The notes: a model not told the origin generated them from the letters alone. 64,000 bases of DNA from Macrostomum lignano (GCA_002269645.1 NIVC01002017.1:148622-212621); one strand, 5' to 3'. Positions 29,401 to 64,000 are shown, counted from the stretch's first letter. Program-made: numbers and translations.

Positions 29401-32400
29401 ACCACGTTGAAGACGTGTCCGGCTGTTCTTGCAGCAGGACCGGCGGCTGCATCATGAACGCATACCTGTCGTCAACCTACCGGTTAGAAATGCGTCGGAT
29501 TTAATTTATTAACACATAATATAGACTTTTAATTATCAGCTAAATTTCGCACTAATTTTACAGCCTGACCGTTCTCGACTGGTCAACCTGCGCCATTAAC
29601 ACGTGGAATTCGCAGGTGAATTCGAACTGGCGCAGCTGCTTAGCTGACGCTCCCGAAGCGTCCTACTATACCAGCCGGAGTTCAATGTGCGGCAACGGCA
29701 TCCTGGAGACTGGCGAGCAGTGCGACTGCGGCCCGGCCGAGGTGAGTCAGAAATAAACAAAACATCGCCAATGCACAACGAAAAGCCAAGTGCTTGATGC
29801 GTCATGCGAAGGTTGAAAGAGCCGGGCACCGCCCCCACAGACTCTCAGCACTATTCTTGGCTTGCTTTGCGCACAGTAAATGCATCGCACAATGGTAACT
29901 CGTCTGTGCTCAGAGCTGAGTCTCAGGGGTTCTAGTCAAGGAGAGGCTATTGTGTGAGATATGCATGAGCTACTCAGCTTTGGCTCAGTACTACATTTAG
30001 TAGTGCTAACAACTAACAATATGCACATTTTACGAGCTTCCATTATATTTGCCCATATGAACACCTCAAATTTCGCGAGTAGCCATGAGTAAGCTTTATA
30101 AAATAAAGAGCTCTCCAAAAAGTGAAGAATTTAATTATTCACAGGGCGTTGTCTCGTCGCAGTCCAAGTACGAAGGGTTTAGAAGAGTGTTTTGCTAATA
30201 CGGAATTGACAACCTAAATACCAAGACATGTCTATGTTGATTAATTATCAATGCACAGAACAGATTAAAGGGCACTGTGTTCTAGATAGCATTAGGATCA
30301 GAGAAAATACTGTGACATTCAATCTTCCACTTGCTAACCATCGCAGACTTGCACATCGAGATGCTGCGACGCCGCTACGTGTCGGCTGAAGGCTGGTGCC
30401 GCCTGCGCCTCAGGGTCGTGCTGCGACTGGAACACCTGCAGCCTGCGATCCAGTGGGGACGTCTGTAGGCCAGCCAACGGTCCGTGCGACGTGCCGGAGA
30501 CCTGCAGCGGCTCCAGCGAGTGGTGCCCAGCCGTTGACAAAGTGGCCAATGGCGTCGATTGCGCTTCCGGTCAGGTGAGATTTTCGTCGCTGGATCGAAG
30601 CTTAAAAATTTCTTTTTTGAGCGTTTCGTTGAGCGTTTTTTATTTTAGTTGAGTGCCTCGATGAAGTTGCTCAGATGCTGGAAACTATAATCCAATTTCA
30701 GGCGTACTGCTACAATGGCCAGTGCAAAACAACGGACTCTCAGTGCCAGCTGCTATACTCCGCCACTGCCACCACAGGGAGCAGCACCTGCTACAACTTG
30801 AACCGGCGGGGTGACCTGTACGGACACTGCAGCCTGCAGCTGGACGGGGTCAGCTACATCTCCGGCGCGGGCTTCAATCGGTCGTATTCCTTCGGCGCCT
30901 GCTCCTTAGCGTGAGTCCGACCCCCGCAGAGCTCAATGACGCGAGAATAACGCCGGAATCAATTTCAGGACGAGCTATTTTAATCTAAAACATTCAATTG
31001 TCTCAGACAGGCTTTTTAGCTTTCTATCCCATTGTTCGATTGAAATTTCCAATTAATTTTAAAACTCAAGTAGACGAAAGAATCATAAATGGATAAGGGC
31101 TTTAGTTTCTCACCGTCTCAAGTGCCCGAAAAATTTCGTTTTTGTGCCAAAATTAAACTGTTTAGCAGAGCTTTTGTATCTTTTAATAGAAAAAACTCAA
31201 AGTATTCTGGTCCATTCCCGTTAATCTACAGAAATTCTGAATGTGGCCTTCTGCAGTGCTACGACACGGCTGCCCCCACCTTTGGGGGCAAGGTGACTAC
31301 AGGTGGCACCGTCTGCTACACGCCTTCGCGGATGGATTTCTCGTCGTCCGACCTGAGAAGTCCCGGGTTCGTTCCCGACGGAGCCAAGTGCGGATCCAAT
31401 TCGGTAAGAGTCCGAGGGACTTCTTGAGTTCAGGGACTTCTTGAGTTCAGGGGCTTCTTAAACTTTAGATTCATAAAGCATTCACAGCTAACCACTGTTC
31501 ATAAAATACCTTTGTAATTTATTTGGTCATTTTTCGTATAGATACCTGGATAGAAAAATCGATTTCCGATTTCATATGCCTGGATACTCGTAATTAAACC
31601 AACAAGATCCAGCTTAGATATATAGATTGATATTCAATACTTCCCTCGTGAGAATTATCGCCATACCTTAAAGCCTCTCTATTCCCCATACCCTGGTTGC
31701 GGGTTTCGGGGTATTGCAATCTGCTTAAATTACAAGTAAAAGTATCTTTCCAAATTTGGATCGGTTTGCTGTTGCAACGCTAAGCAAATTTTCTTCTCTA
31801 GATGTGCATCAACTCGCAGTGCACCTCGCTGAGCACAGTTCGCGCGTGCCCAACCTGTCCGAACTGCAACAGCAACGGTGTGCTCACCCGGGCCAAGCTC
31901 TGCTTCTGCAACGCCGGCTTCGCGCCACCAAACTGCGCAACCACCGGCTGCGGAGGCTCGTCGACATCGCCACTGGCCTGCTTTGGTGAGAGTGCACCTG
32001 TGGCCTCGAAGAGTTTTATTCCTCTGAATCTGTTTCGGTAATAGCAAGGTTAGAATATATCGTTATTACTATAGGGCGCCCTGTCGACATCGTCACATAA
32101 CCAGTGCTGAGGCAATTCTGCCCATTCCGCATGATCACATTGAACACATACAAGCGCGCCAATACTGTACGCAGGCACGCACTCACACACACGCTCACAC
32201 AGGGTGCACAGCGGCCCTTTGACTTTCTAATCGTCACGCATGTACACTCTGTGTGCCTGTGGGGGTTGGGTTGGTCCTGATGGGTGCGAATCGCATGACA
32301 ACTGGCCCTGGCCAATTTTCTGTGCACCCAAACCCCAAATGACTGCAGCAGATGGAATCCAATCATTGGTTCGTGACGCGAGAGTCAGGTGCATTCATTG

Positions 32401-33499
32401 CTCAGCTCAAATTTTACATCTGTCCTGAAATATTGTCTAAGAGGTGAAATCGCCCACTGCTTTTACACGCGCAGACTCGAACAGAACCACAATCAGCCAG
32501 CCGACTACCTCGACGCTGCTGACGACCACGCCTTCAAATCAGAACGGCACAGACCCTGGCACAATCTTCGGCCTGCAGATGTGGCAAATCATTGCCATCC
32601 TGGCTGGCGCGGGCGTTTTGATCCTCCTAGTGATCATTTCCGTCAGTGCGCACTGCGCCATCCGCAACCAGCGCCTCCGTCGGGCTAAAAGAGCCGCCAG
32701 GCCAGCGCCGCCATCGCAGCATCCGCCACCCTCCAGGCAGCAGTCGCAGCATCCGCCACCCTCGAGGCAGCAGTCGCAGCATCCGCCACCCTCGAGACAG
32801 CAGTCGCGACCGCAACAGCCGCTGCCACAGCCGCCTCCCAGGCCAGATTTTCTCCGACCGTCGCCGCATCAAGCGCACAACCCTGCGTTTGTGCTTGACG
32901 ATTTCACTGCAGTGAGCATGCGGATGCTGTCACATTTCGTTTGTTAGTTAGAGGGGCAGAGAGACAGAGGCGCGTACAGCGCCCCTGACTGTCTCATGGC
33001 CAGGCATGCACATTCTCTGTGCCTTGGGAAGGACCAAGCAAAATTTTCATCTTTACCAAATTCAGCGTGTAGCTCTGAAATTAAATAGTTGAGTTAGTTA
33101 CTGGAACGCTACCTACGGCAGTTGCTGCAGTATAGACGAAAATTGCATTTAAAGAAACTGGTAAAACTGAAGAGCCACAATCCCAGTCAGGCAGTTTTTA
33201 AACAATCAAGCCATGGCTACTACAAACAAAAACGCTAGGCCAGCCGAGGAGCTGAAAGCAAGCTTCCTGCAGATCCGTATAAGTAGAGAGGCGATGGCAC
33301 ACAGGTACACAGAAGCTATATCTGATTCATAATTCACGAAGCTTTATTCTCTAATTTCCAGCCTCCGCCACCTTACGAGCCAGCGCGGCCTCAGCCATCA
33401 GCTCCGCCTCCGCCCTCGTTCAGAACGGCCGCCCCGTCTGTGTACACCTTGTCCTCGCCTCAGGCCTGGTCGGAGCGGCCGCCGCCAAGGTATTTCTGA
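26443..33499 (+). CDS. ADAM metalloprotease copy 1, 895 aa, 15 exons: 26443..26497,26589..26745,26818..26961,27037..27319,27405..27473,28918..29078,29162..29249,29331..29482,29564..29741,30347..30574,30702..30910,31232..31403,31802..31985,32442..32911,33362..33499
   Basis: Signal peptide, prodomain ending [13 protein letters not shown], zinc motif [11 protein letters not shown], Met-turn CIMN, disintegrin CGNGILETGEQCDCG, Cys-rich, EGF-like, TM (IIAILAGAGVLILLVII) and Pro-rich tail. All exon phases are compatible (2688 nt). Confidence 0.9.
27480..28824. mobile_element. Mutator/foldback-like non-autonomous element (1345 bp) with inverted arrays of 14-15-bp units
   Basis: GGG...CCC termini and 9-bp TSD GGGGTAAGT (27471-27479, 28825-28833). 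Left array (TTTGCTTGCCGAAG)n at ~27490-27790; right array (CTTCGGCAAGCAAA)n at ~28300-28815. Confidence 0.88.
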
Positions 33500-63200: not shown

Positions 63201-63735
63201 CCTCACCTTCTATATATGGCAGAGAGAGCAGACCAGCGCAACTGTAGACCGTGAGTTAAATTAATTTTCAACCCCGACCTGCGCCCCGCCCCCACCTCGT
63301 CGTTGAAAACCTCGCATGCATAATTGTAAAAATTTTAACGAGAAGACACTCTTTCATTCTCAGCTCTGACTGTTTTCTTTTGTTCGGCATCAGAACAGAT
63401 CGAGTGGGTAGAGATTGAGAGACTGCAGAGTCATAGACCGAGAAGGCTACTCCCCACTTCGAGAGACAATAGTAGTACTATGCAGATATGACATTCAATG
63501 CTATTCAGACGTGCTCGTCGAAGTGCTGCGACGCGAAGACGTGCCAGCTCAAGGCCAATGCCACCTGTGCCTCGGGAGCCTGCTGCGACTGGGACACCTG
63601 CACGCTGAGGCCGAGGGGCCGCGTCTGCAGAGCCGCCGACGGACCGTGCGACGTGCCGGAGACCTGCAGCGGGTCTGGCGAGTGGTGCCGAGCGACGACA
63701 AAGTGGCCGACGGAGTGGACTGCGCTGCCGGTCAG
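60287..63735 (+). pseudogene. ADAM copy 3, exons 1-10 (continues beyond window), probably disabled: 60287..60299,60379..60553,60995..61135,61212..61503,61580..61648,61751..61911,62004..62090,62186..62340,62430..62610,63509..63735
   Basis: Close paralog of copy 2 with [11 protein letters not shown]. Exon 5 donor is AT rather than GT. Exon 7 is 87 nt versus 88, and exon 10 is 227 nt versus 228. Confidence 0.72.
60630..60808. mobile_element. hAT-type MITE (179 bp) in ADAM-3 intron 2
   Basis: ~50-bp TIRs CAGGGACTACTCAAACACCGGGACGGGAAACT / AGTTTCCCGTCCCGGTGTTTGAGTAGTCCCTG; 8-bp TSD GGCAGATA. Absent from the ADAM-2 intron. Confidence 0.93.
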
Positions 63736-64000
63736 GTGAGAGACGCTGCTGAAAACAGGTGTCTGGTGTTGTGTTTTTTTACATTGTAGCTTAAGCACCT
63801 TGATTTGATTTTGTGCCTGTCTGAGCTATGAGCTACATATTTAAAGTTCATACTCGCTTCTCGAGTAAGTTCATCTGTAGTTATGTCTTTCTGCCTGTCT
63901 GTTTCTGTCTGTCTGCCCCTGCCTGCCTGCCTGTCTGCTCTGTCTGCTCTGTCTGTCTGTCTGTCTGTCTGTCTGTCTTCTGTCTGTCTGTCTGTCTGTC

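Follow-up and report, generated by a model that had tools for sequence, protein, structure and literature searches.

Tandem duplication with ends in two neighboring ADAM genes as the probable origin of a chimeric ADAM gene in Macrostomum lignano

How does a gene in a tandem array come to resemble one neighbor in its 5' part and the other neighbor in its 3' part? The question is raised by three ADAM protease genes on the plus strand of the final 64 kb of Macrostomum lignano contig NIVC01002017.1 (Mlig_3_7 assembly, GCA_002269645.1), the stretch of DNA analyzed here and called the window below. We designate the ADAM-1 ectodomain A-type, the ectodomain of ADAM-2 and ADAM-3 B-type, and the exons for the transmembrane (TM) segment and tail of ADAM-1 and ADAM-2 T, such that the gene order is ADAM-1 (A), ADAM-2 (B5'+T), and ADAM-3 (B5'...). 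Window position 64000 is the last base of the contig and falls within ADAM-3 intron 10, which leaves the 3' end of ADAM-3 outside. No literature on these M. lignano genes was found. Our analysis indicates that ADAM-2 is probably a chimera, in which a tandem duplication gave a B-type ectodomain the A-type TM segment and tail.

Comparison of the window with itself using blastn produced one colinear series of matches, spacers included, in which 55014-64000 aligns with a stretch that begins at 32004 and extends to 41580 or further (Table 1). The matching blocks are offset by 21.9-23.0 kb between the two copies of the unit. ADAM-1 and ADAM-2 are ∼87-96% identical from the junction through the intron, TM exon, tail, 3' untranslated region (UTR), and spacer, and the high similarity then continues past the spacer into the 5' halves of ADAM-2 and ADAM-3. 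Ungapped identity is 0.873 in the tail half of the unit and 0.877 in the 5' half. Outside the unit ADAM-1 aligned to ADAM-2 and ADAM-3 in exons alone, at 72-82% nucleotide identity, and blastn gave no alignment between its introns and theirs; the A-type and B-type ectodomains are ∼53% identical at the protein level. The change is abrupt: the EGF exon is 74% identical (31799-31988 versus 51904-52093), and identity exceeds 90% from around 20 bp into the next intron. These results bear out much of an earlier interpretation made from the DNA alone (the sequence-only reading). It had noted the divergence of ADAM-1 and ADAM-2 in exons 1-13 with unalignable introns, their close match from 32011 and 55021 onward, the close match of ADAM-2 and ADAM-3 over the promoter and exons 1-10 with introns included, and an offset of ∼22-23 kb, from which it had described a unit that starts inside a gene and comprises a 3' end, a spacer, and the 5' part of the next gene. 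We place this unit at 32004-55013. The earlier exon numbering, with 13 ectodomain exons in ADAM-1, a TM exon 14, and exons 1-10 of ADAM-3 in the window, was also correct.

The ends of the unit could be located to within a few bases. The sequence GAGTTTTATT is present exactly twice within the window, at 32011 and 55021, and when ADAM-1, ADAM-2, and the homeologue of ADAM-1 are aligned together, the homology to ADAM-2 starts within CCTYGARGAG at 32001-32010. The left (A) breakpoint is 18-25 bp past the ADAM-1 exon 13 donor, and the right (B) breakpoint is 1.54 kb past the extra mucin exon and 2.9 kb past the EGF-equivalent exon of ADAM-2. The breakpoint flanks are unalignable and have in common only ∼3 bp of microhomology of the CCTYGARGAG type. 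No repeat or transposon common to both breakpoints and able to mediate homologous exchange was found. The joint lies in the intron that precedes the ADAM-2 TM exon. Phase 1 applies to the end of the EGF exon, to both ends of the mucin exon (symmetric, 1-1), and to the start of the TM exon. The ADAM-2 frame is open across the joint because both breakpoints are in phase-1 introns; with all phases equal to 1, any intron-to-intron joint here preserves the frame.

The gene model of ADAM-2 was built from splice sites together with the predictions P0004, P0009, and P0028 from the ML2 assembly. A start codon at 38428 and a TM-exon acceptor CTAAG/ were replaced after comparison with RNA-guided models. 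The encoded product begins with a signal peptide and ends with the TM exon and the last tail exon. Pfam detected Reprolysin (PF01421; E = 3e-35 in ADAM-2 and 7e-38 in ADAM-1), Disintegrin (PF00200), and ADAM_CR (PF08516) in both proteins, the latter two above the gathering score. The zinc motif HExxHxxGxxH was found in both Reprolysin domains by direct reading. An EGF-like cysteine pattern in exon 13, a hydrophobic stretch, and a Pro-rich tail were likewise read directly, exon 13 giving no Pfam EGF match. In this combination of Reprolysin domain with zinc motif, Disintegrin, and ADAM_CR with a putative EGF-like module, a putative single TM helix, and a Pro-rich tail the genes resemble the ADAM proteases (MEROPS M12B), and their best non-flatworm matches are ADAM8/9/12/adm-2-like proteins, at 35-38% identity. 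They differ from other ADAMs in three respects. First, the B-type copies have a 434-amino acid Thr-rich mucin exon between EGF and TM. In ADAM-2 this exon has the splice sites TTTACAG/GACCTG and ACAA/GTATGT, and 70 copies of an 18-bp repeat span 52211-53474 (Tandem Repeats Finder (TRF)); the EGF-to-mucin splice is common to models P0002, P0004, and P0010. Second, no Pfam match to the prodomain Pep_M12B_propep (PF01562), which many homologues have, was obtained in ADAM-1 or ADAM-2 at a cut-off of E <= 0.001. The ∼200 residues that precede the protease domain may represent a divergent prodomain. Third, the protein searches, which were word-indexed and lossy, detected no relatives of the tail beyond this group of genes.

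A second genomic copy of the locus is present on contig NIVC01001489.1 (L002), which is homeologous to the window and was compared as far as the equivalent of window position 42477. The two contigs are colinear and 94-96% identical. L002 carries the ankyrin gene, ADAM-1' (P0011, an RNA-guided model with A ectodomain and T tail), a spacer, and exons 1-11 of ADAM-2', and the ADAM-1' junction, ...GTGGCCTCGAA/GAGTTTTATTC, is the same as that of ADAM-1. The merged ML2 models P0028 and P0009 give the gene order ADAM-1, ADAM-2, ADAM-3 and span both transitions. This support is not fully independent because the ML2 and Mlig_3_7 assemblies were built on common PacBio reads (PMC5730564). Three other candidate lines were rejected. 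P0007 was considered as the ADAM-3 tail and is 94.4% identical to the ADAM-2 tail versus ∼90% to that of ADAM-1, which fits the homeologous T2'. P0010, considered as an extra array member, agrees with ADAM-2' in the exons available from L002. The order of UniProt accessions proved inconsistent as a guide to gene order.

If the unit arose by a single duplication event, near-equal divergence of its two halves is expected. Synonymous divergence (dS) between the ADAM-1 and ADAM-2 tails is 0.196 with a nonsynonymous-to-synonymous ratio (omega) of 0.39 (172 codons), and between exons 1-10 of ADAM-2 and ADAM-3 it is 0.151 with an omega of 0.27 (512 codons); between ADAM-2 and its homeologue ADAM-2' it is 0.037. 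The non-coding Jukes-Cantor distance is 0.15 in the tail half versus 0.20 in the 5' half. The tandem copies diverge by ∼12-13% overall (6% coding, 18% non-coding) with many kb-scale indels; the homeologous contigs diverge at this locus by ∼2% where coding and by 5-7% where non-coding. The halves of the unit are of about equal age, which exceeds that of the subgenome split several-fold, and each is still coding. Both have been under purifying selection since the duplication. The six coding indels between the tails are all multiples of 3 (6, 3, 30, 9, 15, and 12), whereas the flanking non-coding indels are not. The sequence-only reading had regarded the exchange as "caught" in the array, a description that does not suit an event that predates the subgenome split (dS of ∼0.15-0.20 versus 0.037).

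Later gene conversion between array members is superimposed on the duplication in patches. At 33701-34300, 42 sites group ADAM-1 with ADAM-2 and 19 group it with its homeologue; for ADAM-2 at 39291-39620, 23 sites favor a grouping with ADAM-3 and 12 a grouping with ADAM-2'. At 32004-32474, 29 sites group ADAM-1' with ADAM-2, 6 group ADAM-1 with ADAM-1', and 10 group ADAM-1 with ADAM-2.

We propose the following history. Two old tandem paralogues would have been adjacent, an A-type ADAM with the T exons and a B-type ADAM with the extra mucin exon. One tandem segmental duplication, extending from ∼20 bp into A intron 13 to ∼1.5 kb into B intron 14, would then have produced the array A5'-[T-spacer-B5']-[T-spacer-B5']-(B 3' end). 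The duplicated segment would have been ∼14.5 kb at that time and 23 kb now through retroelement insertion. The recombinant would be the middle gene, ADAM-2, rather than ADAM-1; in it A-type exons 14-15 come after B exons 1-14, an order for which ordinary splicing would suffice. The predicted protein has B-type protease, disintegrin, Cys-rich, and EGF domains on a long O-glycan-type stalk, with an A-type TM helix and Pro-rich tail, and we infer that the chimera is expressed and functional. Joining would have occurred by illegitimate exchange (end-joining or replication-template switching) before the subgenome split, followed by purifying selection on both halves and by the conversion patches. 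The sequence-only reading had likewise combined the ectodomain and mucin stalk of the B type with the TM segment and tail type of ADAM-1, a pairing that our analysis supports. It had attributed the joint to an unequal crossover in the EGF-TM intron. The joint is indeed in the intron before the TM exon, but the breakpoints are out of register and their flanks unalignable, and there is no homology at the joint. For these reasons illegitimate recombination or template switching most likely made it, rather than in-register homologous crossing-over.

The hybrid genes of the Lepore and anti-Lepore hemoglobin, opsin, CYP11B1/B2, and glycophorin arrays arise by unequal homologous crossing-over, in register, between highly similar sequences. 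The M. lignano array is similar to anti-Lepore in that tandem parents of the same orientation flank a hybrid whose 5' part is from the downstream gene and whose 3' part is from the upstream gene. It differs from Lepore and anti-Lepore in the lack of register between its breakpoints, which lie in introns that do not align and, on one side, past an extra exon. Surveys in Drosophila have described chimeric genes formed by tandem duplications with ends in different genes (PMC4069613, PMC5460883). As in such chimeras, the unit here ends in two different genes, its copies stand head to tail, and the reading frame across the joint is open; the segment combines the 3' part of one gene with the 5' part of its neighbor, a new 5'B-3'A gene stands between retained parents, the breakpoints have no homology requirement, and exon shuffling is automatic. 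Here, however, the parents are old paralogues of one family, making this a within-family domain swap rather than an unrelated fusion. The Drosophila cases are also mostly young segregating variants, whereas the event at this locus is old, fixed in two or more subgenome copies, and subject to purifying selection.

Several observations weigh against the proposed history. The 3' end of ADAM-3, which is decisive for the polarity, is beyond the contig end, and no divergent "B-type tail" was found in protein searches, which were word-indexed and lossy (separate searches missed the known P0011 and P0004). ADAM-2 has no NCBI gene annotation in contig NIVC01002017.1, and its splice from the mucin exon to the TM exon is predicted by the gene model rather than by RNA. 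The NCBI RNA-guided model of ADAM-2' (L002 position 22258 onwards) has only 797 amino acids, insufficient for ectodomain, mucin stalk, and full tail, and no Pfam match is recorded for it; an indel within the mucin repeat may have truncated it, or its 3' end may differ. The conversion patches blur the dating. In this assembly ADAM-3 has 1-bp deletions at ∼62025 (GGTGG-GAAAC, exon 7) and ∼63688 (GGTG-CCG, disintegrin exon), together with a GT>AT change at the exon 5 donor (61649). The NCBI partial model PAA61587.1 (P0008, BOX15_Mlig016139g1, 186 amino acids) is limited to the stretch between the frameshifts. These lesions reflect either decay of this copy or assembly errors of the homopolymer type close to the end of the contig; ML2 model P0009 has neither deletion, and the indels are probably assembly errors. 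In favor of the proposed history, ML2 models P0002 and P0009 show that the B-type character of ADAM-3 persists beyond the window, past the EGF exon and into the beginning of the mucin exon. The C-terminal peptide of P0009 past the mucin start has no match in the window.

An alternative that we consider unlikely, though the strongest of those weighed, is that ADAM-1 is the recombinant. The B genes would natively carry T in tandem whole-gene units [B5'+T+spacer], a Lepore-type deletion, or the shortened product of an unequal exchange, would have placed A exons 1-13 in front of the T exons belonging to the first B unit, and ADAM-3 would likewise be T-tailed. This predicts an identical pattern within the window, and it would suit the confinement of the T-type tail to this small gene group, for which the lossy protein searches detected no relatives elsewhere and no other B tail. 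The B5'+T combination is found in both subgenome copies (T2', P0007), the contig break inside the array suggests further repeats, and exchange between array members is demonstrably active. However, at least three events (two B duplications and a deletion) would be required, whereas a single event accounts for all three genes if ADAM-2 is the recombinant. Nor would one expect from it that T1/T2 and B2/B3 have diverged almost equally, and the A5'+T arrangement is RNA-supported and kept in both subgenome copies with the same junction. The B-like paralogue P0003, known from ML2 and MetaClust and located outside the window, has no T-type tail, ending instead in a Ser/Thr stalk and a GPI-signal-like (glycosylphosphatidylinositol) hydrophobic C-terminus; this gives weak support to ADAM-2 as the recombinant.

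Gene conversion alone, acting to homogenize the 3' ends of A and B genes that are old whole-gene duplicates with no part-gene duplication, is very unlikely. The sequence-only reading had itself named homogenization of the tails as a threat to its conclusion, and the patches at 33701-34300 and 39291-39620 do show conversion occurring. They are, however, just 0.3-0.6 kb long, far below the more than 9 kb of colinear sharing through 3' UTR, spacer, and next promoter and exons, and conversion leaves the colinear spacer and the single sharp left boundary, the same in both subgenome copies, unexplained.

An assembly artifact, in which haplotype or subgenome copies of a single gene were stitched in tandem, was the other threat named earlier and is hardly tenable: three subgenome copies exist in strain DV1, the redundancy and error-proneness of Mlig_3_7 are known (PMC5730564, PMC10733133), the array breaks off with the contig, and ADAM-3 has homopolymer-type deletions, but the tandem copies are ∼12-13% apart (18% non-coding) with kb-scale indels as against a genome-wide subgenome SNP rate of 2.2% (PMC10733133), an RNA-guided model joins A exons to T, and the second contig, with the same A5'+T, spacer, B5' arrangement and junction, and the ML2 models crossing both gene-to-gene transitions (shared reads aside) exclude an artifact for practical purposes.

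Table 1. Window positions of the array genes, the duplicated unit, and associated features
Feature	Position	Strand	Remarks
ADAM-1, A-type, 15 coding exons, 884 aa	26443-33499 (coding sequence)	+	NCBI RNA-guided model P0026, PAA61586.1 / BOX15_Mlig004569g2, exon-by-exon mapping
ADAM-1 exon 13 (EGF)	31802-31985	+	
ADAM-1 exon 14	32475-32911	+	short Ser/Thr stalk, TM, Pro-rich tail
ADAM-1 exon 15	33362-33499	+	
A-only stub of intron 13 (GTGAGAGTGCACCTGTGG...)	31986-32003	+	directly left of homology boundary
188-bp insertion in ADAM-1 intron 13	32057-32244	+	absent in ADAM-2 and homeologous ADAM-1'
ADAM-2, B-type ectodomain, mucin stalk, T-type TM/tail	38388-56294	+	16 GT-AG exons, intact 1306-aa open reading frame (ORF)
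ADAM-2 exons 1-5	38388-38400, 38483-38663, 38944-39087, 39164-39455, 39531-39599	+	
ADAM-2 exons 6-9	39700-39860, 39947-40034, 40130-40284, 40374-40554	+	40130-40284, zinc-motif exon
ADAM-2 exons 10-13	41096-41323, 41873-42081, 51645-51816, 51907-52090	+	41096-41323, disintegrin; 51907-52090, EGF
ADAM-2 exons 14-16	52173-53474, 55304-55719, 56169-56294	+	52173-53474, mucin; 55304-55719, TM
Mucin-like exon 14, 434 aa	52173-53474	+	Thr-rich, mostly hexapeptide repeats, 70.2 x 18 bp (TRF)
B-only part of ADAM-2 intron 14, left of junction	53475-55013	+	no second copy in window or L002 sequence
Degenerate Ty3/gypsy-type retroelement, ADAM-2 intron 11	42800-51100	+	gag-like, reverse transcriptase, RNase H, integrase ORFs
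ADAM-3, B-type, exons 1-10 only	60287-64000	+	exact peptide mapping of ML2 model P0009, alignments
ADAM-3 exons 1-5	60287-60299, 60379-60553, 60995-61135, 61212-61503, 61580-61648	+	
ADAM-3 exons 6-10	61751-61911, 62004-62090, 62186-62340, 62430-62610, 63509-63735	+	62186-62340, zinc-motif exon
Unit copy I, 23,010 bp	32004-55013	+	rest of intron 13, TM/tail exons, 3' UTR, spacer 1, ADAM-2 exons 1-14, B-only intron (blastn, identity profiles)
Unit copy II, cut by contig end	55014-64000	+	intron remainder, ADAM-2 TM/tail exons, spacer 2, ADAM-3 exons 1-10 (blastn)
Tandem-duplication junction CTCAACCTTGAG/GAGTTTTATTC	55011-55021	+	ADAM-1 counterpart 32001-32011
Insertion private to copy I, spacer 1, ∼3.25 kb	34652-37906	.	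gap in colinear series
Insertion private to copy II, spacer 2	57715-59873	.	gap in colinear series
blastn block	32004-32056 = 55014-55066		90.6% identity
blastn block	32245-34413 = 55071-57253		E = 0
blastn block	34507-34651 = 57446-57590		
blastn block	37907-37996 = 57622-57714		
blastn block	38004-38693 = 59874-60578		
blastn block	38797-40659 = 60849-62717		91%
blastn block	40961-41580 = 63367-64000		

Within the unit, the copy-I spacer insertion gave no Pfam domains in its ORFs, and the copy-II spacer insertion includes a 65-bp tandem repeat (11.2 copies, 58044-58768; TRF). The retroelement in ADAM-2 intron 11 gave Pfam matches to RVT_1, RT_RNaseH, Integrase_H2C2, and rve; a search for its long terminal repeats found none. 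Nested in it is a 3.76-kb segment bounded by 931-bp inverted repeats (43536-44466 and 46362-47292) that are 99.8% identical by self-blast. The segment could be a young foldback or long-terminal-inverted-repeat insertion or a long-read hairpin artifact. The retroelement flanks at 42262-42546 and 51238-51561 are inverted copies of each other (69% identity), probably a dispersed repeat present in both orientations in this intron. A (GTCT)n microsatellite of ∼94 copies follows the ADAM-2 disintegrin exon (41347-41717), and the ADAM-3 disintegrin exon is likewise followed by (GTCT)n (63760-64000), within which the contig terminates.

The last tail exon of ADAM-1 (33362-33499) encodes a PPPPY (PPxY) motif that has been lost from the ADAM-2 of the window (56169-56294) by in-frame deletions, giving PPPPAW; the homeologous T2' tail (P0007) retains PPPPYQ. 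The C-terminal residues of the ADAM-1 and ADAM-2 last tail exons differ, one end being SERPPPRYF. ADAM-1 intron 5 contains a 1.3-kb block (27480-28823) that is absent from the homeologous contig and is made up of a pair of 14/42-bp minisatellite arrays running in opposite directions (27487-27778 and 28298-28816). A giant ankyrin-repeat gene on the minus strand (14858-24100), with a single 2073-codon ORF at 14858-21076, is the immediate upstream neighbor of ADAM-1 in each of the two subgenome copies; the NCBI model has 2742 amino acids and extends further upstream. A large inverted duplication occupies 9344-13316, with arms at 9711-11309 and 11694-13316 (89.7% identical) and a further pair of arms at 9344-9711 and 11305-11692. 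It has the appearance of one element present twice, head to head, and its ORFs gave no Pfam matches. At the left end of the window are a glutathione S-transferase gene (1183-2403, plus strand; GST_C_3 and GST_C matches) and a PP2C phosphatase gene (5624-7684, minus strand; PF00481, E = 1.6e-37).

P0003 suggests a second divergence discontinuity in the family, and hence a further exchange or conversion, in that its disintegrin exon is 93-96% identical to those of ADAM-2 and ADAM-3 and its Cys-rich and EGF exons are only ∼60% identical. On the strength of the A/T boundary, this step in identity, and the GPI-signal-like end of P0003, the cluster might be viewed as a recurrent module-swapping array in which the duplication replaced the lipid-type anchor of a mucin-stalked ADAM by a TM anchor, provided that the ancestral B anchor was alike; we regard this as doubtful. 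If true, membrane anchoring and cytoplasmic coupling would have changed in one step and then been kept by selection, and the Pro-rich tail that was gained would be signaling-competent (PPxY and PxxP motifs).

For M. lignano genomics, the array is real but incompletely assembled, with ADAM-2 unannotated in this contig. The locus presents no new mechanism; it is an old, selectively maintained instance of an already known process. It provides a natural example, resolved to junction bases and intron phases, of how a duplication with ends in neighboring paralogues may swap anchor and tail with the frame intact, and its product has persisted under purifying selection through a whole-genome duplication.

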